From: Hyaloraphidium curvatum SAG 235-1
Lineage: Eukaryota; Fungi; Monoblepharomycota
DNA length: 64,000 nucleotides
Assembly: GCA_025558095.1 (NCBI GenBank)
Contig: JAIVFI010000021.1
Location: 372,001-436,000, forward strand
Direction of reading: 5' to 3'
The translations under genes were made by a program, and so were the position numbers. The notes beneath the pieces are model-generated. The model made no database searches. It was not told the origin of the DNA and saw only the letters and a list, made by a program, of their open reading frames with translations. This document shows positions 9,370 through 38,131 of this stretch, in pieces. Numbering within the stretch: position 1 is the first letter of the stretch; every line of letters begins with the position of its first letter.

Positions 9370-10434
9370 TCAGGTCGGCGGGGCCGGGCCGTGCTGCACC
9401 TTTCCCCCCGCGCGCAGCCTCCCGAACCTGAACCCCTGCAGCGGGCGGACCTCGATCCCCTTGAGGTTCATGACCGCCTTGAGGAACGTCTCGGCGTGCA
9501 GCGAGCCCTCGTAGTAGCCCTGGCTCTCGTTCACGACGCTCGGCACCGAGTGGTGCAGGTACAGCTCGGCGAGACGCATGCGGTGGCCGTAGAGGTCCAT
9601 CACCTCGGGCGTCCCGACCGCGAAGCGGTCGTTGACCCCCGAGTACGAGTCAAAGTCGGGGGCGTACAGCGTCCGCGGTGCGACGTCGGGCACGGGCAGC
9701 GGCGTATCGTACCACAGATCGGGGCGCAGGTACGTGACGGCGCCGTAATCGGCCCGGCGGGGCCACCACAGCTCCGACACGCGGTCCAGAGAGTGCTGCT
9801 GCAGCAGGAAGTTCCGCATGGACCGCCCGCCGGTGGTGGGCCACGGGTCGCCCCGGATGAGGTAGTAGTCGAGGCTGCGGAAGCCGGCGAGGGCCTCTTC
9901 GCGGGTCGAGAAGGACGCGGCGAGCAGCCGCACGCCTGCGGCGGCGAGCCCGTCCTTGAGCACGCGCAACGACCCGGCGACGTCGAGCCTGGCCTGGCGC
10001 TCGCCGTTCCGCGGGTTGTCGAAGCTGTCGAGCGCGAACGTGTGCAGATACGCGTCCAGACGGCCGCACCGGGCGGCCAGCGGCGCCAGCACGTTGTCTG
10101 CGAGGTTTGCGGCGTGCGAGGCGTTCAAGTTCTTTAGCTGGCCGAAGAAGCAGAGCGCGCACGGGCTGCCGCCGCCGTTGTCCGCCGGGGCGTCCAGCAG
10201 CGCGGCGGCCGCGGCCTCGAGCGCGGCCTTGAGCGCGGCGTCGGGCGGCAGCGCGGCGGGGGCGCGGCCGCACGCCGTCCGCGGCGGCTCGGGGCCGGCC
10301 ACCGTCGCCCGCCGCACCTCGGCCGCGAGCGCCTCACGGCAGCCGTCGCGCATCCGCGCGCCGCCGATCGCGCCGGCCCCGAGCAGCGCGAGCGCGGCCG
10401 CGGGCCAGAGCAGCCAGCGCCGCAGCCTCGCCAT
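9370..10434 (-). CDS. Putative glycosyltransferase-like type II membrane protein (ALCFxGQ...RPD...NDRFA family)
   Basis: Signal anchor followed by ALCFFGQLK, YLHTF, QQHSL, YLRPDL, GVNDRFAVG and HAETFL motifs. Intronless. Confidence 0.65.
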   Translation of the reverse strand: MARLRRWLLWPAAALALLGAGAIGGARMRDGCREALAAEVRRATVAGPEPPRTACGRAPAALPPDAALKAALEAAAAALLDAPADNGGGSPCALCFFGQLKNLNASHAANLADNVLAPLAARCGRLDAYLHTFALDSFDNPRNGERQARLDVAGSLRVLKDGLAAAGVRLLAASFSTREEALAGFRSLDYYLIRGDPWPTTGGRSMRNFLLQQHSLDRVSELWWPRRADYGAVTYLRPDLWYDTPLPVPDVAPRTLYAPDFDSYSGVNDRFAVGTPEVMDLYGHRMRLAELYLHHSVPSVVNESQGYYEGSLHAETFLKAVMNLKGIEVRPLQGFRFGRLRAGGKVQHGPAPPT

Positions 10435-10626
10435 AACTGGGCGGGACGGAGGGGAAAGGAGTGAGCGTCCCTCGGCGCCGCCCCATCATTCGCCGCCGCT
10501 ACCCCTTCGACGAGATTTGGAGACATTCGACCAAATCCTATCCTCCGGAACAGCGACCGACTACAGAAAAGCAAATGATTCATGTTCCACCGCCGCCGCG
10601 CCCGTCCGCCGCGCCGCACGCGCAGA

Positions 10627-12104
10627 TCATCCGTCCCCGCGGCGGTCCGCCTCGGCCTTGAGGCGGCGTGCGTGCGTGTTGGCGTGGCTCTTCATGTTGT
10701 CGATCCTGCGAAAGCAAGAACAGGAACGAGGTATCGGGGTGAGATACGGATCAAGGCGCCGCGGAGCACGGCGCACCGGTGAAAGCGGGCGCCGCATCCC
10801 TCGACGGGACACGCGTACGGTCGCAGGTCCAGGTGGATCCTGCGATGCCGGGAAAGGTGGCCCGACGACCCGAACACGCGCGGGCACGACGGACAGGGAT
10901 AGTCCCTGCGGGAGCGCGGGGCTGTCAGCGGGCCGGGCGGCGCGAGGCGACAAGCGACCGACTTTTTCTTCCCGCCCTTCTTCTTCTTGCGCTCCTCCTC
11001 GACGGCCTCGGGCTCCGGGCTGCGCGGGCTGTCCTCCTCGCTCTCCGCCTCCGAGTCCGCGTCGCGCATGGCAGCGTCCGCGGCGCCACCGCCCGACTGT
11101 GTCGGGCTGACGCCGTTCATCCTGAAGCCGGCCATGACGGCCACGGCGGCGCGCTCGGCCTCCTCGTCCGCGGCGGATGCGATCGAGCCCGACGACGGCG
11201 TGGTGGAGCCCGAGGGCGGGGCGCCGGTCGAGTTGATTGTCATTGTGGCCAGCGGCAGGTCCGCCGACACGGCGCGCAGGTGCGCCTGCGACGTCGCGGC
11301 GGCGGCGGCGGGGGGCAGGGGCGGCCCGTGCGGCGGCGTGGCCCACGGCACGGGCACGGGGCCCAGCGGGGACAGCGTGCCGGAGCCGGCGTAGCGCGCG
11401 GCGAGGTCCCAGTCCGAGCCCGCTGCGGACGAGCCGATGCTGGCGTCCGAGGCGTGCGAGCCGCGGTAGCCGCCGGCCGCGTCGTCCGCGAAGATGGGGC
11501 GCAGGCCGCCCGAGCCGCGCATCGCCGGCAGGCTCTTGTGGCCGAGCACCGACAGCGGCGCGCCGACGGTGCGCGCGGCGTGGGCCATTGCGTGCGCATG
11601 CGCGGGCGAGCGGGCGGGGCCGGGGCCGGTGGGCGTTGCCGGCCTGCGGATGTTTGTGTAGGGCGAGATGCCGATGCCGTGGCCGAGCGCGGCGTGCGCG
11701 TGCGGCGGCGGGTGCGGCGGGGCCAGCGGCAGCGGCTGCTGGAGCGCGTAGGCGCGCATCGGCTGCAGCGACTGGAAGCCGGCGAGCAGCGGCGGCGCGG
11801 GGGCGGCGGGCGGCAGCGGGCCGGGGAGGGCGGGCGGCGCGCGCGGGCCGTCCCACGCCGGCGCGGGCCACGGCGGCGCGGCTCCGCCACCCGCGCCCCA
11901 CGGCGGCGGCCGCGGCGCTCCGCCGCCCGGCCCGAACGCGCCCGCCGGCGGCTCGACCGGCGCCGGCCGCTCGGCTGCCCCGCCGGCCCCCGCGGCCCCC
12001 GCGCCCCCCGCAGCGGGCACCGCCGGCGGCGGCTCGGCGGCCAGCAGCGACATGACATCCATCTTGTGCCGCGCGGGCGCGCTGGCCGCGGGCGGCGCCT
12101 CCAT
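10627..12104 (-). CDS. C2H2 zinc-finger transcriptional repressor, Nrg1-like
   Basis: C-terminal pair YPCPSCPRVFGSSGHLSRHRRIH-LDLRP-YACPVEGCGARFHR/IDNMKSHANTH, with an intron inside finger 2. N-terminal MDVMSLL motif and Pro/Ala-rich body. Confidence 0.85.
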
Positions 12105-12995
12105 GTCGGATGTGGGGTGCACAGTCCCGCCGCCTGCCTGCGCCGCCTGCGCCGCCCCACCCCACCCCCCACCCGGACCCACCGACCCCGCCGCCGCGCC
12201 TGCTCCATCCATCCCCGCCACATAGCACAAGGCATTGGCCTCGCGGATACAAAGCTACACGCGCCGCGCCATCGGCCCCGCTCCCGATCCCTCCCGCAGC
12301 CGTCCGATGTCCGATGTCCGTCGGCCGCCCGGACCCTACGGCCACCCTTTCGTCCCACCTCCGCCCGCCCGCGGCCTCGGCATCGCTGGCTGCAGGTGGC
12401 CGCTTCCCGTCGTAACAGCCGTCTCGGGCAACTCACCGCACGAGACCACTCGCCAGCCGGGTGACGTAAGACTGGGCCGGTCCCCGTTCCCCCGCCCCGA
12501 GACCTCAGCTGCGCAACGCTCTTGCCCGGACGTTCGTCTCTGTGCTTCCCGAGTGCCCATGACCACGCCGGGCGTATCGGAAGACGGGCGCGGCGACCGA
12601 ACAGTGGCCGCTCCTCCGCCCCCGGCCTGGACCGGCCCCCGGCCCCGGACCGAACCTGCTGTAAGTCCGAACCCGAATCCGGTCGTTTCTCATACCTCAG
12701 CACCGTTCGGCTTTCGTTGGACTCTTGTCTCCTCGAGGCCGCCTTCCTCGGCGGACCCTCATCCCTGGGTCCCTTCAAAAGCCCGAGGGAGATCCCGTGC
12801 GTCCTACCTGCGATCCCCAGGACGGCTGTTTGAGGACTCCAGATTTGGCATGCCCGGCATCGGCTACAATCCAAATGGGGATTCCGAAAGATTCCGGGAA
12901 CTCAGGTGTAGTCTTTTGCCGCGCAGGCGGCGTAGGTGGGAAAGAGGCGCAATACAGGATGGAAAAGGAACTTCGGTCCGAGACCACCCGTCCAA

Positions 12996-13685
12996 TCAGC
13001 ACGGATCCCCGGCCTCCGGCCCGGCAAACGTCCAGGGGTACAGACCATGCACCGACCCCGCCTCCGCCGCCTCCCGCAGCACTTCCCGGATGGCCGCATC
13101 GTCCGCGTCCCCCGGGTCCCACGCCCCGCCGTCCTGCTGCGCGTCACCGCCGTCGCCATCCCACTGCCCTTCGCCGCAATGAAGTTCCGTCCCCAGCGGG
13201 CCCTGCGCCGCGCCGCCGCCGTGGTACGCGTCCCAGTCGCCCGCCCCGAAGCCCTCCTGCCCGTCCGGGCCCTCGAGCCCCTCTGTGTCCCCCGGTTCCC
13301 CGTGCTCTGCGGCCCCGGCATGGTGCTCCCGGTCCGCACGGCCCCGTACAGCCCCCGCTGCCGCCCCCGAGCGCAGGCCGCCCAGCGCCGCGCGCTCCGC
13401 GGCCAGCGCCGCCCGCGCCGCGCGCAGCCGCGCCTCCCGCGCGCGCAGCCGCAGCAGCAGCGAGTCGCCCGAGCGCGGGCCGCGCGCGGGGCCGCCCGGG
13501 GGCGCGCGGCGGGGCAGCGGCCGCGACGGCGGCAGCACCGCGACGTCCAGCGCGCCGATGCGCACGCGCCGCCCAGACGGCGGCGTCGGCGGCCGCCCCG
13601 GCGCCTCTGCCTCGGAGCCCGCGTGCGACGGCGGGGACACCGAGCCCGATCGCGTGTCGAGGCGCCGGTGGATGTGCCGGAGCAT
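12996..13685 (-). CDS. Hypothetical protein with short coiled coil
   Basis: ATG start, GC3-biased codons and LLLRLRAREARLRAARAALAAERAAL helix. No family recognised. Confidence 0.4.
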   Translation of the reverse strand: MLRHIHRRLDTRSGSVSPPSHAGSEAEAPGRPPTPPSGRRVRIGALDVAVLPPSRPLPRRAPPGGPARGPRSGDSLLLRLRAREARLRAARAALAAERAALGGLRSGAAAGAVRGRADREHHAGAAEHGEPGDTEGLEGPDGQEGFGAGDWDAYHGGGAAQGPLGTELHCGEGQWDGDGGDAQQDGGAWDPGDADDAAIREVLREAAEAGSVHGLYPWTFAGPEAGDPC

Positions 13686-13870
13686 CGCTCGCCGTTACGT
13701 GGGTTCCCGCTCTGGACTCCGGTCCATGTGGCGCGCCATTATTAGAGACCCGCACTCTCTTAAGCCGTCCCACGCGACAGCTGAAATCCTCGTTCTCTCT
13801 GTCGCTAACTCGGCATTACAGCCTCTATGCTCCGCCATCTTCACGTTCCTGATTGTGTCCGCAGGCTTTG

Positions 13871-13926
13871 CGGCCGCGCATACGTGGCACCGCCGGCCGC
13901 GCATACGTGGCACCCGCTTACGTGGC
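13871..13926. repeat. 21-nt direct duplication containing TACGTGGC (three copies of the core)
   Basis: cggccgcgcatacgtggcacc at 13871-13891 and 13894-13914, with a third tacgtggc at 13919-13926. Confidence 0.8.
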
Positions 13927-14853
13927 GTCCGCGAAAACTACAAAAGGCAGGGTGCATAGGCTCCCGCATCATCACCAAACGTCTCCTGCCCCGTGCGCTC
14001 ACCAGCATAGAGCCATGAGGGCCCGCAAGAAGCGCAAGAAGAGCTTCCCGGTCGCGCTCTCGCTGTTGGGGGCGCTGTCCTGGTGGGAGCGCGAGCGCCG
14101 CCTGCGCCCTGCCCCCGTCGCCTTCTCACCGCGGCATTTCCCATCTTTCGGCAGTGCCGCTGCCGTCACGCGCAGGACAACGGCCGTGGTCTCGGCTCAT
14201 CGAGAGAAGTAGGTCTCGCAACAAAGACGCGCCGGAACGACACACCGACCTGACGGTTCAGCAGCCATCTTATCCTCATTTTGTCGCTTCTTTCTCTCTG
14301 TTACTCGGCTACAACGACTGACGGGCGACGAGCGCACGGGCGCTGCGCGGCGCCGACGGCCGGAGACCGCCGATCGAATCGAGCTGGACTCCAAGTGCAC
14401 TCTCTTGCACCCCTCGGCATTGCGCGCGACTGTGGAGTTCGGAGCTCAACCAAGCCTACCTGCATGTGCATTATCCTGCCCGCCCGCCCATGGATCTCCA
14501 CCGTTGCAATGTGGTGGAACAACGTGTGGGTGGAGCCTGCATTCGCCTGCGATCGTGCCGGCCAACGTTCCCTTGCAGACTGATCTGGAGAATTCGTGGG
14601 CAGGGAAGGGATATCAGGTAGCAAGTTGTTGAGGACAGTAGCCAGAGAACTAGTAGCGGCGTCGAACCTGCGGAGTGCGGGTTTCTGATGTAGCCGCACT
14701 AGTGTTGTTTACATCTCCGTTCGGTCCTTGCAACGCGGGCCGCGGGTTCCAAAAACCGCGCCGCAGGAAGAGCGACGCGACTCGGACCAAAGCCGGAGCT
14801 CGGTCGGGCCGGAACGGACGATAGTCTTCTAGGGCGGGCCCACGACGGAGTCG

Positions 14854-31013: not shown

Positions 31014-34000
31014 ATGACGAAGCCCGCTGGAAGACCCATTGCGGTTCAGCGCATGGGCTTAGCTCCTGTGGTGGAAACGTACCACACATGGTACACGGAG
31101 CTAGGACGGCCCGCTGATCTGAAGGATCCAGAATGCCGTGGGTTGAAGATGCTGCTGCCAACTCTGGCTTTTCTGCTGATTGGGTTTACAGCCGTTTGGG
31201 AATACGCCGCAAGGGGCATTCCGGTCTTCTACATGGCCCACCGATTCTACGACGTCGACGAGTCGCTATCGCTGTTCCTGAATAGGGATTGCAACAAGAA
31301 GTACGAGACTAAGCCGCATGCCCGGGTCGTCTTTTATCCGAAGGAGGTATGGAGCAGCTCGTTTGCCCTTTCCATGGATGCGCATCCCTGATCTCCTTTC
31401 GGTCACAGCATGCAGCATTTCTGGCTCCCAAGTCGGTCTCCCCTCGCATGACTGTGGCGTATTGGTGCTGATCTTCCCCCAGCGTCGTCGAACGAGCTAC
31501 AAAGAAGAAGGACAAGGTTTCTTTCTGGGTCCCGACCATCAGTGAGTTTCCAGTCGCATTTCCCCGAGCAGCTCTGACAGAAACTCCCAGCTGCCAAGCA
31601 TTACATCGACGCGGACTACACGTTGTTATACAACAGCATGGTCATCAAGTCTCTCGACGACGAAGAAGTGCTCGCGTTCTTCGACAAACATTGCACGAAG
31701 ACCTTTCCCGCAGGGCAAAGGAGGGTGAATTACCGGCCCAAGGACGTGAGTGCAGCTGCTCCAAGACATCATCCTTTACTCAGCGTCGCTTCATCCTCAT
31801 CGTCGCCTCTTCCCCTGCATCATTGTCTGGTTTTGAAGCCAACTGCGCCCACCCCAAGGTCTGGCTCGACAGTTCAGTTCTCTGTGCTTGGCAAAACTGA
31901 CGCATTCTTCCATCCACCATCTCCTGCATACCAGTGGCCTCAACCGAGCCCTGATTGATTTGCAGGATAGGCTTCCCAAGAATCGAAGGGAACGGCGCGA
32001 CGCGGGTCGCAGGGCAAGAACTCCAACGGAGCAGGAGACGGAGCAGGAGCCGCCCGCAGGTCAACAAGGTAGAGTAGATGCTTGCAGTGCAGTGCAAACG
32101 ACCTAACTTCTGCACCACCATCCGCAGCAGCTCGTATCGGGAACCCTCAAGCAGCTTCAGAAACGAACGAGCCGGCGCAGAGCGGTATAGTGCAACTAGG
32201 TGCAGCCATGCTGCACTACTGAGCCTTCCTCCGCCTTTCTCCGCTGCAGATGACTGGGAACTGCCCCACCCGTCGACGATCGCCATGCCCAACCCGTCCC
32301 CCACCCCCGCGCCGCAATTCAAGGCACGGCAGGTCGGCGACGGCCACGGTCGCACCAAGCCGTCGGAACCATGTGGGAATGCTCCGGCTCGTGCTTCCGG
32401 AGCCCGTCCTGGTGCGGCCACGGCCACGGACTTGGACTTGGACGACGACGACGACTTGAAGGCGGGTTTCAGTTAAGATTCGCTTCGTTTCGGATCCTCA
32501 TCCTAGTACAGATCGTGGACTGCGCGTCCGACACCAAGCCTCCTTCTTCGGCCGAAGCCAAGCCCACCAAGGCTAAGTCGAAACCCAAGACGACCAAGTC
32601 GGATATCGTTCACGTGGTAGGTGATGTCGGACTCTCGCGAGTTTGTGCGTGACTGGCTTGCATTTCCACAAAGCTCGACGATGACGAAGATCTTGTTGAT
32701 CACGTCGACCAAGCCAAGCAGGTCAACCAGGTGCTTGCTCACTTCCCCTTTGCGTATGCGGAAGACGCCGTCAAGATGTTGGCCAAGCACGGGACGGTGG
32801 ACGCCGCCATCAAGGCGCTTGAATTCGTAAGGTCCCGTTCGGCTCCAGCTATTCTGCGACCTGATGATTTGGGCAGGTCGAGTTGGACCGCGACGTGGCG
32901 CGACTGTACCACGAATTCGCGGCCATCTCAAATGAGCAAATTCAAGACCTAGTCGCTCGGTCTGACGGTGACCCCAGGGCTGCGAGGATGATGGTTGCGG
33001 AGCTAAAAGAGAGCCTGACAATGTCGAAGGTGAGGTTCATTCTCGCGCTCTGCAACCAGCAGCGGCCTCTGATGTCACGCCAAGGAGAAACCAAAGCACG
33101 TGGAAGTATTCGCAATCCCGGATTCGGAACCCGAGGAGCAGGAGCAGCCGGACGAGTTCGCGATCAACATGCAGGTAAGCACGATGTGCAACTGCACACG
33201 ATTATCCCGTGCTGACCTAATGCTACAGAAGAGCTTCGAGGACGAGGAGAAGCCTCTCGATGGACGTTCGATTGGCATGGTAAGCATGCGCGGTCACTTT
33301 CATGCACGTCCTTGCTTGGAGGATTCACGATCCATTGCAGAGAAGCAAACTCGAGCCTCTGAAGGAGGAGGAACAGCAGCAGACGATCAAGGGGAAGCAG
33401 CAGCAGACCTTCCTCGGTCAGATTGTCAAGCATGCGCGTGATCGGCAAACTACCACTCCAGCAGGTCTCAAGCCGAACTTTTTCAATGGCAAGTTCCATG
33501 GACTCTACGACAACGACGGCAAAGACTTGGAAGACATGGCAGACGAAGATTACCGGGAGGCGAGCAGGCTTCTTCTGTGCACGTCGTGCCTGCAACCATT
33601 GACCATCATCGGCACTTCAGATCAGCATGGACATTCGGGCGACGGTCGACGATATGGAGGAGGACGAAGAGGAGATTATTCGCCGCCGCTCTACGGTCCG
33701 GCCCTTTCTGCGACGTTCAAGGCAAGCTTCTAACAACTTCATTCTCCGGCAGAAGAAGCGGAAGATTTCGGCCTTGGACTCGGACGACGACGTCGACCTA
33801 CCGGCAGGTGACACATCACGTTGTTACTACCCTTTGCACTTCAGTTTGTGCTGACTCTTCTTCCCAAACAGTCACCGCAACGGCCGCGGATTCGAGTGTG
33901 TCTGCACAGGTAGCAGGTTTTGCTGGCAACTTGGCATCCGCGCGAGTGCTAACTGGCGCATGTGCTACAGGCGCCTCGAAAGAAGCAGCGAGGTCGGCCG

Positions 34001-37000
34001 AAAAAGACCGACAATGTCGACGGTGCCGAGAGCAAGAACAAGAAGAAACCCAACGGCCGGTATGAGCGCATCATAAAGGAAGACACTGAGGGTACGAACA
34101 AGCTGGGCTGGTCAATATGCTGCACTCATTCACCCCATGATCCATCCAGCTGGGCGAGGACAATACGCCTTCTGCAACTTGACCAAGTACGCGCTCGCAA
34201 GATTCATGGTTGACGCAGTCTCGAATGGATCAACCAAGGACGAGGCAGTTAAAGCCGCCTCCAACTTCTTCTTCGACGGCAAGGTCTCGCACTCGCAGCT
34301 TCTCATAGTTTACGGAGCCAACCAAGTGAGTTTCCCCTCTCATCTGTTGCGGCATCCTTTGAACAAGGCCTGTAATCCGGACAGTCCTCACCAATGACGT
34401 GGGAATCAGCGCAGACCCTGGCGCGCTGTCTTTACTGTCGCCAAGAGGTGCAGTTTATCGAAGATTTCTGGAGCTCTAGAGAAGACTTGAGGAAAAGAGT
34501 CGGCACAAGCAAGACAATTCCTCTGGACATTCGCCGTCAGCTCGTCACTTACATGCAAGACCGCCTACCATTCCAGTTTTCGATAAACGACGTGCGGTAC
34601 AGTAAATCCAAGCTGTTGAGGCCCAACCCCCAGGACTACGAGGAAGGCAGCTGGGCGGTGCTCAACATGGAGAATTTGTGCAGCTTTATGCAGGAGGAGC
34701 ACTTCAAGGAGACTCCGGAAGCACCGACCATTATCCTGCGCATCTCCAGCGAAGAATCCAAGGCCATCTTGGACACCTTCTGGAAGCAGGTCAAGGAGGT
34801 TCGCATGGACATCCCGTGAGTGCCAGCCCTCATCCAAGCCGTTATTGTCTAAGTCTGAGCTGGACAACAGTGAAATCCAGCAGGCTGCGTTTGAAGTGCA
34901 GGGCAATACCTTCTCGGACTTTGGAATCTCATGTCATCTGAACACGAAGACTGGCGGATTCAAGGCCAACTTGTCAGCGGACGATTATAAGAAAGCATAC
35001 AACGAAAGGTTGGCATCAAGTTGTGCACCATTGCTCCAGTGTTGACGTTTCGTCGTCGCCAGTCATTCCAAGGGCTTGAAAAGGTAAGCGCCATGGAAGC
35101 AGTCTCTCTGAGCCCGTTCTGAAGCCATCTGCCCCAGATACTATGCATCGGAAGCCGGACAAGCCAAGCAGAAGGAGAAAAACGCCAAGATCAGCGCGGG
35201 TCACCTGAAGTAAGGACGCACACGAGAGAACCGATGCGGCCGTTACTCACCCTCCTTGTAGGCATAATGCATCGGAGGCAGTTCAGGTGACCAAGGAGAA
35301 GAGAAGCGCCGGTCTCAAGAAGTGAGCAGCACACCAGCTTGGAGTCCCTTCGTCCCTGACTCGCATCTTCTCAGGTTTCATGCTTCGGAAGCCGGGCAGG
35401 TGGCCAGGGAAAAGTGGAGCAAGGACCGGCTTGAGTGAGCACGAGTCAAAGTCTAAGTTGCAAAGACCGCACCTGAGCTGTCTCGCTTCCACCTCAGGTA
35501 CTATGCAACCGAAGCAGGGAAGGAGTCAACTGAGAAGAGCCGTGCAGGCCTAAAGGAGTGAGTGAGCACGGCAAATTCGCGAGGCCGCACGCAAACAACT
35601 CAATGCCCAGGTATCATGCTTCGGAGAAAGCACGGGCCGTCAGGAAAGATGTGAACGAAAAGATCAGCTCGGGGCTTAAGAAGTGAGGAAACGGAACGCT
35701 CGCTCTGGCCTGCTTGACAGACATTCTTCATCGGGCCCTAGTACTACACTTCGGAGGCAGGGCAGGCTGCGAAGCCGCAGAGGATCCAAAGCCGTCGAGA
35801 GTGAGCAAGGAGAAGCCTCGATGAGCATGTGTTTGGCTGACCCTGTTCTGTTTCAGCTATTACGACACAGCAGCCGGACAAACTACGAAGGACAAGATCA
35901 GCAAAAGCCTTCGAGAGTGAGTGGCCAAGAAGAGCGTGGACTTTTAACTTACACCCACGTTAGGTTCAATCAATCTGCACAGGGCATCGTCAACCGTCTC
36001 CGACACTCCGCAAACATGAAGCTGTAAGTCTGATGGCGGCTTGACAAGCAGTTCAGTCTGCTAATCGCAACCCCAGGATGTGGTCAAGCATGAGCGACGA
36101 GGAACGAGACCAAGCAAGGGCGCGGCTTTACGTTCGTGGAGGTGGAAAGGTAGCACTCAACCTCCCTCCTGCCTAAAGACTGCTGATGACATCTTGCTCC
36201 CTAGCTCACCCCCATCACCATCACCGTGGACGGCGACGACATTACCTGTTTCGTCGCCGGCTGGGAGGGCAGGACGCTGTCCTTCTTCGAGTTCCTGCTC
36301 GGTGAAGGCTTTGCTGAGCTGCATGTCAAGAATGACCTCTATCTCCCCGGGACCTCCGAGGAGATCAACACGAGGGTCCCGAGATCGTTTGATGAGCACC
36401 GAACGGCCTATACTTCCTACACCCTCGATGACGAGATGTTCGGGCACCGACTTGATCATCAGGTGAGTCGGAGGTACGACGATGCATATGTTTGAATCTA
36501 ACGTAATGCATGATCAGGTCTCCGGGAACGTTGTGCCTCTGCTCCAGAAGCTCCTTGGTGCAACGACCGAGCAAGAAGTCCGCAAGCGCCTTCTCCCTAG
36601 CCTCTCGAGCCTCGGACTGGCCCACAACTTCGATCTTTCGCAAGCTCAGTGGGAGACGAAATGTCTCTTTCAAGTGGTGCGAGGTGGAGCCCGAGGCGTA
36701 CAAGTCTTCTGGGAAAAGGGCGCCGGGGCTATTCGGCAGCTTCGGCAGCCATACTTTGCGATCGATTGGGCTCACAAGAGTGCTTACATCGCTGTGCCAA
36801 CCATCTACGAGGGGGAGAAGGTGTGGGAGGTGCTGGCAATCATCCTTGACAGCGACTTCCTGGCTACCCCTGATAACATCCGGTCTGTTCGACTATCGTC
36901 TCCGTTGAGATCTTTTGCTCACAGTCATTTCAGAACGTTTCGCCAACACGGCCGATATCTGGAGAACCGCTGCGACAAGGAGGTGATCGCAGTCCCCAAG

Positions 37001-37606
37001 ATCTTCCTCAACGAGGTCGCGGCGCAGACGGCCGGCGTGCACGAGCAGACCCCGCTCGAATGGGCACTTGAGGGCTGCCCGGGCGTGCCTCCCGACCGGC
37101 GCCCCAAGATCATTCGCATGGACGGTCTCTTTGCCGCGTGCCCCGTCAACGACCGTGCTCGCCGCGTCGTTCGGGCCAAGGCCATGAACCCCAGGACCAT
37201 GCGAGTCGTGTTGGAAGAGGCAGAGGGAGAGGGAAGGGGCGCGAGTGAGGAGCAGCTCATGGGCGAGGAGCAGGGCGAGCGCGAGGGCAGGGAGCAGGGC
37301 GAGCGCGAGGGCGAGGAGCAGATCGAAAGCGACTTCGAGGAGCAGTCCGAGGGCGGGAAGGAGTTCGACCCCGAGGAGCAGTTCGATTTCGAGGAGCAGT
37401 TGGGCGGGGAGCAGTTCGATTTCGAGGAGCAGTTGGGCGGGGAGCAGTTCGATTTCGAGGAGCAGTTGGGCGGGGAGGAGTTCGACTCCGAGGGGGAGCA
37501 GGGCGGGGAGGAGTTCGACTCCGAGGACGAGTTCGACACCGGGGACTTGGGAGAACCTCGGCGATCTGTACTAGAAGCCAATGAGAGACCACTGGTGCTG
37601 TACTAG
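31014..37606 (+). CDS. Large multi-exon orphan gene: CUE/UBA-like helices, AT-hook, exon-encoded NUMOD3-like repeat array, novel globular domains, acidic repeat tail
   Basis: More than 20 short GT-AG introns link the + strand ORF fragments. VLAHFPF...AVKMLAKHGTVDAAI and LYHEFAAISNEQIQDLVARSDGD are CUE-like, RGRPKK lies at ~33989 and the repeat exons span 35138-36149. It may be two genes. Confidence 0.6.
35138..36149 (+). repeat. Tandem array of symmetric phase-2 exons (60/72 nt) separated by dissimilar 47-63 nt introns
   Basis: Exons 35138-35209 (72), 35262-35321 (60), 35375-35434 (60), 35498-35557 (60), 35611-35682 (72), 35742-35800 (59), 35857-35916 (60), 35964-36023 (60) and cap exon 36077-36149. 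All are flanked by YAG and GT donors. Confidence 0.9.
37376..37530 (+). repeat. 33-nt coding minisatellite (EQFDFEEQLGG)
   Basis: GAGCAGTTCGATTTCGAGGAGCAGTTGGGCGGG occurs three times perfectly at 37376-37474, with degenerate flanking copies. Confidence 0.9.
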
Positions 37607-37828
37607 GTGCAGAGGCAAGAGTATTGGTCTTGATTCGGACCATGAGGAATGAAAGAGAGTCCATGGAATCCCGTCCATTATGAAACAATAGGCTCCCTTC
37701 CGAGGCACAACCCCGATGTCAAAGGGCGAGAACAATTCCCGTCCGGCCTCGATGCTCAATCGAGGGAGCCCGCACGTGGCGTCCACAACGCAGACATCAT
37801 CCAGAGAAGCGTCTGGAAAGTGGAAAGC

Positions 37829-38131
37829 TCAACGTTCTAGTAGCCCGGAGAGTCCGTCTCCGAGCGCCTTCTTGAACATGGCCTTGCCTCGGTCCGATTC
37901 GAAGGCAATGAGATGGGGCGGCAGGGGTCGGCGATAAAACGTGCGCGCAAGGAGCTCCGCTGCAACATTGGCAGGCGAGCGCTGCTTAGGCGACGGCGGC
38001 GGCGACGGCGGCGATGGCTTCGGAACGGGGCTCGGGAGCTGCGGCGCCCCTTTGCGGATCATTGTCTGTGTCTGCCCGCCGGAAGCCTGCCGCCGCATCG
38101 CAGGCACCGGCTGCGCGACACGATGAGCCAT
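37829..38131 (-). pseudogene. Phytochelatin synthase 5' fragment
   Basis: ARTFYRRPLPPHLIAFESDRGKAMFKKALGDG matches the PCS N-terminus and is followed by a stop. No catalytic Cys region follows. Confidence 0.8.

Follow-up and report, generated by a model that had tools for sequence, protein, structure and literature searches.

A probable tandem exon duplication array in a single-copy orphan gene of the fungus Hyaloraphidium curvatum

Introduction

Proteins in which each repeat is encoded by one symmetric exon are known from animals, where the collagen triple-helix exons and the repeat exons of nebulin and titin are examples. Another described layout is that of the HMGA-like proteins, AT-hook chromatin proteins that carry acidic tails. 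Here we analyze an array of short exons from Hyaloraphidium curvatum SAG 235-1 (Fungi; Monoblepharomycota; assembly GCA_025558095.1, 31.9 Mb in 55 contigs), located in a stretch of 64,000 nucleotides (nt) that covers positions 372,001–436,000 of the forward strand of contig JAIVFI010000021.1. This whole stretch is called the window below, and all coordinates are counted from its first letter. The array lies at 35063–36149 and probably arose by old tandem duplications of a single exon together with its intron.

Two further bodies of work bear on such an array. The NUMOD3 module of homing endonucleases, which an initial annotation of the window had invoked for the encoded repeats, is found in tandem copies in I-BmoI (PMC3664794). 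In fungi, reported levels of exon skipping are low and intron definition has been proposed as the prevalent splicing mode (PMC6142364, PMC3925392), which lowers the prior for any array whose output would be tuned by skipping.

Results and discussion

Organization of the exon array

All exon and intron borders were checked base by base with a script, and the segment 34700–36500 was also read directly. The gene structure at this locus is fungal in type. The border check agreed with the initial annotation on eight exons of 60 or 72 nt (one of 59 nt) in phase 2-2, here numbered E1 to E8 and separated by introns of 47–63 nt (Table 1), and translation of the checked exons reproduced its eight peptides exactly. 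All nine introns of the array are in phase 2, start with GTAAG or GTGAG and end with CAG or TAG, and eleven consecutive canonical short introns at the locus hold one frame.

Because phase 2 is combined with GTGAG or GTAAG donors, an in-frame TGA or TAA stands one codon past each repeat exon, and a single retained intron would lead to an immediate translation stop. These stops directly 3′ of the exons explain why lists of open reading frames (ORFs) miss the array, a gap that had been noticed in the initial annotation. The mini-exon preceding E1 may derive from a degenerate unit 0 that was split in two, of which it would be the second half, the likeness of its tail to that of the repeats having been judged by eye.

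Homology, age and selection of the units

To assess the relationship between the units, we built leave-one-out profile hidden Markov models (HMMs) and searched them against the whole window translated in six frames. Outside the training set, the best match was the left-out unit itself for repeats 1, 2, 3, 6 and 7 (E values of 5e-4, 6e-7, 1e-5, 1e-3 and 5e-5, respectively). Repeat 4 was marginal (E 0.05), repeat 5 was weak owing to an insert of four residues (E 9.8), and repeat 8 was not recovered from this translation. Judged by sequence, the demonstrably homologous units are seven in number; the eighth exon matches them in size, and its membership in the family is not demonstrable. The count of eight repeats given at first is thereby upheld for units 1–7 but not for E8.

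The units, 20–24 residues long, have a common layout in which an aromatic pair is followed by small residues with S/T-E-A-G and then by K-E-K-x-S-x-G-L-K. They are rich in A, E, K, S, G and Q, contain two glycines each and have a net charge of 0 to +4. The array, first described as made of basic modules, is thus only moderately basic.

At the DNA level, identity among units 1–7 was 0.605, 0.61 and 0.443 at codon positions 1, 2 and 3, respectively, where ~0.30 is expected at random. The introns, compared without their splice signals, reached an identity of 0.53 vs 0.50 for shuffles, meaning that no similarity exists beyond the splice signals and that they are indeed unrelated, as had been proposed. 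The T content is 14% in the exons and 21% in the introns, and the composition switches at each boundary. A repeat search revealed DNA blocks common to the exons at a spacing of 112–125 nt. Tandem Repeats Finder did not detect the array, suggesting that the duplications are old, and the gradient across codon positions, taken together with the saturation of the introns, indicates that the units were duplicated long ago and that selection then acted on the peptide read in this frame. No competing ORF was found on the minus strand across the array, and Rfam returned nothing credible over 33500–38000. The possibility that the introns carry small nucleolar RNAs was rejected because they are too short.

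Adjacent exons are hence homologous (five units clearly and two weakly), and their introns lie at equal position and phase, as is characteristic of tandem exon duplication. The length is divisible by three in seven of the eight repeat exons, exon 6 with its 59 nt being the other one. We consider it likely that the array results from old tandem duplications of an exon-plus-intron unit in a single-copy, lineage-specific, intron-rich nuclear gene. The duplicated unit would be one exon plus one intron, about 107–131 nt. Selection has maintained its peptide, and the introns have diverged to saturation. All exons would normally be spliced together constitutively, since short fungal introns are recognized by intron definition and a retained intron stops translation.

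Table 1 Features of the exon array and of its putative host gene (window coordinates).
Feature	Position	Strand	Size and phase	Basis
Candidate upstream exon encoding R-G-R-P between K/R residues, an AT-hook-like core; presumed to belong to the same gene	33971–34091	+		Pfam AT_hook E=0.023; heuristic exon chain
Largest upstream exon, orphan domain	34385–34815	+	143 aa	No Pfam match; no homologue; single copy; AF2 pLDDT 53
Exon preceding the array	34871–35008	+	ends in phase 2	Frame continuity; GT..AG borders
Mini-exon encoding an x-S-x-G-L-K tail	35063–35083	+	21 nt	Border check
Repeat exon E1	35138–35209	+	72 nt, phase 2-2	Leave-one-out E 4.7e-4
Repeat exon E2	35262–35321	+	60 nt, phase 2-2	Leave-one-out E 6.4e-7
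Repeat exon E3	35375–35434	+	60 nt, phase 2-2	Leave-one-out E 1.1e-5
Repeat exon E4	35498–35557	+	60 nt, phase 2-2	Leave-one-out E 0.053
Repeat exon E5, with 4-residue insert	35611–35682	+	72 nt, phase 2-2	Leave-one-out E 9.8; DNA blocks common to other units
Repeat exon E6, lacking the first base	35742–35800	+	59 nt	Leave-one-out E 1e-3 in its own frame
Repeat exon E7, unit closest to the NUMOD3 core	35857–35916	+	60 nt	Leave-one-out E 5.2e-5; 9.2 bits with custom NUMOD3 HMM
Exon E8, of equal size and phase, repeat membership not demonstrable	35964–36023	+	60 nt	Leave-one-out: not recovered; 15% identity to E1
Non-repeat exon, restores phase 0	36077–36149	+	73 nt	Border check
Nine introns of the array, total span	35084–36076	+	47–63 nt, phase 2	GT..AG borders
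Introns 1–5	35084–35137, 35210–35261, 35322–35374, 35435–35497, 35558–35610	+	54, 52, 53, 63, 53 nt	
Introns 6–9	35683–35741, 35801–35856, 35917–35963, 36024–36076	+	59, 56, 47, 53 nt	
Exon opening the C-terminal region	36205–36462	+	86 codons	Border and frame check
Last exon: orphan C-terminal domain, acidic-aromatic repeat tail (~37250–37545), stop codon	36518–37606	+		Frame free of stops over 379 codons

A host gene of orphan domains

In the predicted protein, the array would form a moderately basic segment in which A, E, K, S and G are abundant. Upstream of it would lie a probable AT-hook and an orphan domain, and downstream a further orphan domain followed by an acidic-aromatic tail. This C-terminal tail (37250–37545) is itself repetitive, being composed of acidic-aromatic 33-nt units with 93% matches, and is far younger than the exon array. 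The C-terminal domain (241 residues) had 0 matches among 1.84 billion (1.84e9) protein representatives and none in metagenome contigs. The mid domain (143 residues) had none in metagenome contigs or in a word-indexed protein search, which is length-limited and could miss longer relatives. In the ESM Atlas, the C-terminal domain returned weak GAF and HTH_17 look-alikes (score 0.90, 149 shared features), which are leads only, and the mid domain returned no match.

Neither flanking domain has a second copy in the H. curvatum genome. Paralogues of the array differing in the number or order of their exons, a search for which had been proposed in the initial annotation, were not found either: across the 31.9 Mb of the genome, the repeat profile matched these eight exons and no others.

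The overall layout could fit that of a nuclear protein binding chromatin or nucleic acids, an assignment that we put forward tentatively from domain order and composition, and we judge binding of nucleic acids by the array itself to be somewhat less likely than not. Several points weigh against our overall reading of the locus. The upstream AT-hook-like match, the only one that Pfam gave outside the array, reaches 14.9 bits (E 0.023), where the Pfam cut-off is 17.4 (PF02178). Two heuristic dynamic-programming models of the gene disagree in its 5′ part, upstream of ~33970, and are unreliable. The single-sequence AlphaFold2 (AF2) models are poor, with a predicted local distance difference test score (pLDDT) of 45 for the C-terminal domain and 53 for the mid domain, and as both predictions are of low confidence, a role in the nucleus or in DNA binding finds no support in a predicted fold. 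Finally, inclusion of exon 6 shifts the frame and leads to a TGA at 36017–36019 in exon 8, which would be compatible with a recent inactivation of the gene.

The main functional rival is a hydrophilic spacer. According to this explanation, the array would be a largely disordered linker or a stress-protein-like repeat of the hydrophilin, late embryogenesis abundant (LEA), KGG or Con-6 type, with no role in nucleic-acid binding. The abundance of A, E, K, S, G and Q, the two glycines per unit and the net charge of only 0 to +4 are what such a spacer would display, and we take the 20-residue units to resemble the period of KGG/GsiB-type repeats. However, neither the KGG (PF10685) nor the Con-6 (PF10346) model matched at the array, and Pfam found nothing on the exons; genome-wide, KGG gave three sub-threshold matches, all on other contigs, and Con-6 gave none. 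The conserved aromatic pair and the fixed glycines would rather suggest a structured unit, and the AT-hook-like motif and the acidic tail in the flanks point to a nuclear protein. A spacer is an unlikely explanation in our judgment.

Three other observations were made in the window. At 33753–33776, a protein-like frame upstream encodes K-K-R-K-I-S-A-L followed by an acidic run, which looks like a nuclear localization signal; by eye this stretch recalls the K-I-S tail of the repeats, and neither of the repeat profiles matched it. Two short exon-like stretches at 32722–33029 resemble three-helix motifs of the UBA/CUE type and had no Pfam match. Further away, the G+C content rises to 0.72–0.76 at 10001–14000, compared to 0.52–0.66 in the rest of the window, and the GC skew is strongly negative at 12–14 kb.

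Exon 6 and the reading frame

The initial annotation had suggested that any subset of the exons could be skipped in frame. By arithmetic, this holds for seven exons, which are symmetric and whose skipping keeps the frame, but not for exon 6. The acceptor of exon 6 reads CCCTAG/T (35735–35745, the slash marking the junction), where the sister units have a CAG/G-type junction in the same register, and its AG lies one base downstream of the position used in these units. No alternative AG or GT that would give a 60-nt exon was found nearby. The missing base could possibly be explained by substitutions that moved the acceptor, by a one-base deletion or by a one-base assembly error. As the sequence is assembled, a full-length protein can be obtained only if exon 6 is skipped or the sequence is corrected.

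The same data might indicate that the locus is a pseudogene disabled not long ago, or a gene with a truncated product, in which exon 6 is included, translation ends at the TGA in exon 8 and the C-terminal domain is lost. This would agree with the canonical borders of the 59-nt exon, with the lack of a nearby AG or GT to rescue it, with the displaced acceptor and the stop met by the shifted frame, and with splicing by intron definition, which would include exon 6. Yet the downstream frame of 379 codons is intact, and exon 6, read in its own frame, is still recognized as a repeat (E 1e-3), suggesting that the change is very recent, bypassed or artefactual, for instance a one-base assembly error. 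We consider inactivation of the gene to be distinctly unlikely.

Comparison with NUMOD3

The consensus of the units had been likened by eye to the NUMOD3 motifs of homing endonucleases. In searches run exon by exon, the Pfam model NUMOD3 (PF07460, gathering score of 20.4 bits) had no match on any array exon at E ≤ 10, nor did it match anywhere in the whole genome at this threshold. A sub-threshold SUV3_C match on exon 5 was regarded as noise. The repeat profile matched no chain of the PDB, and the hhalign probability was 0.4% against T4 I-TevI and 2.6%, over 11 columns, against seven aligned segments of true NUMOD3.

We also scored the exons with a custom NUMOD3 HMM derived from 259 instances in 109 GIY-YIG endonucleases. 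The best exon was E7 (9.2 bits, with only model positions 8–17 aligned), followed by one at 5.1 bits; E6 and E8 were negative, and the background of the window was 3–5 bits. As positive controls, true NUMOD3 proteins scored 30–86 bits and I-TevI 19.3 bits. No GIY-YIG or HNH domain was found in the stop-free segments of the gene, and the sole GIY-YIG match of the genome is on contig C28. Membership of the array in NUMOD3, judged exon by exon and by the repeat profile, was rejected on these grounds: the Pfam and hhalign results, the gap between 9.2 and 30–86 bits and the absence of a nuclease domain at the locus.

What did withstand controls is a shorter resemblance. Ten positions of the model (K-x-K-I-S-x-x-x-K) align to the corresponding part of five units, in their C-terminal half, and the summed score of 23.4 bits was equalled in 0 of 1000 residue shuffles and in 4 of 2000 column permutations (P ~0.002, chosen post hoc). 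In the reverse direction, all eight matches of the array profile of at least 3 bits in the endonucleases fell inside NUMOD3 segments (24% of the endonuclease residues), and the reverse matches numbered 56 vs 19 ± 4 in within-segment shuffles. The S-E part of the whole NUMOD3 motif (G-K-x-H-S-E-E-T-K-x-K-I-S-x-A-x-K-G), on the other hand, is offset by 3 to 8 residues in the units. As the members within each family are related, the permutation tests amount to one motif-versus-motif comparison, and NUMOD3 was picked after the sequence had been seen. The likeness between the array and NUMOD3 is a weak one, which we read as a short basic-helix-like patch compatible with convergence or very remote kinship; it is a likeness of motifs and proves neither membership nor descent. 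Of the NUMOD3-like consensus proposed initially, the K-x-K-I-S core was retained and the family assignment was not.

One could nevertheless imagine that the units are NUMOD3-type minor-groove helices taken from a homing-endonuclease module and that skipping of cassette exons tunes the number of modules. Besides the order-dependent local match and its reverse counterpart, such a proposal could call on the tandem NUMOD3 copies of I-BmoI, on the possible AT-hook upstream, which would be another minor-groove binder, on the seven symmetric exons and on the fact that, with the sequence as assembled, only skipping of exon 6 gives the full-length protein. The profile searches described above argue against it, as do the S-E half being out of register, the lack of a GIY-YIG domain at the locus, the reduction of the permutation tests to a single motif-level comparison with a family chosen after viewing the sequence, and the low frequency of exon skipping in fungi. 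We regard this proposal as very unlikely. Its most elaborate form, in which domesticated NUMOD3-like helices would make up an exon-modular DNA-reading array with a module count set by skipping, and exon 6 would act as a frameshifting switch (inclusion truncating the protein, skipping giving the full length with the C-terminal domain and the acidic tail), we hold to be highly improbable.

That the array arose by chance or is non-coding DNA wrongly read as a gene, for which one could cite the lack of a homologue of the C-terminal or mid domain in the protein and metagenome searches, can be practically dismissed, given eleven consecutive canonical short introns in one frame, significant leave-one-out profiles, a conservation gradient across codon positions, a switch in composition between exons and introns, and no competing ORF on the minus strand.

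Significance and comparison with known systems

The array is a real and tidy feature, of an ordinary kind, in an orphan gene. It offers a clean fungal example of a repeat array that grew via tandem exon duplication, in a gene of restricted taxonomic distribution, and it illustrates, within one locus, the difference in selection between exons and introns. It is also useful for gene annotation, as ORF-based callers miss it entirely. Its interest is modest unless the choice of exons proves to be regulated. If the repeat exons were skipped in a regulated manner, with exon 6 as a switch and DNA binding dependent on the number of modules, the array would be a natural modular, splice-programmable DNA-binding scaffold, and it would sit in a lineage for which exon skipping is considered uncommon.

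Compared to the NUMOD3 modules of the GIY-YIG and HNH homing endonucleases (I-TevI, I-BmoI, I-HmuI), the array likewise consists of short tandem basic modules and has the K-x-K-I-S-x-x-L/x-K patch, with a reciprocal match above permuted controls. It differs from them in scoring far under the family threshold, in having the part that corresponds to H-S-E-E-T out of register, in lacking a nuclease domain and in residing in a nuclear gene full of spliceosomal introns. With the hydrophilin repeats KGG and Con-6, it has in common hydrophilic tandem units of ~20 residues rich in A, E, K, G and S.

The predicted protein also recalls the HMGA-like layout, as a candidate R-G-R-P AT-hook, a basic middle part and an acidic C-terminal tail would be combined in one chain. 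Unlike in the HMGA-like proteins, the AT-hook is under the Pfam cut-off, the exon carrying it is only presumed to belong to the same gene, and most of the domains are orphans.

The closest parallel in architecture is with the collagen, nebulin and titin type of array. The array described here departs from these in belonging to a genome of the fungal type, with introns of 47–63 nt, for which intron definition and low skipping are expected, in encoding an unclassified basic motif of 20–24 residues in a gene without known relatives, and in having one asymmetric exon, exon 6. Like the animal arrays, it carries one unit per exon with a constant intron position and phase, its exon lengths are divisible by three and so permit the gain or loss of units in frame, and its exons have been conserved while its introns have drifted.

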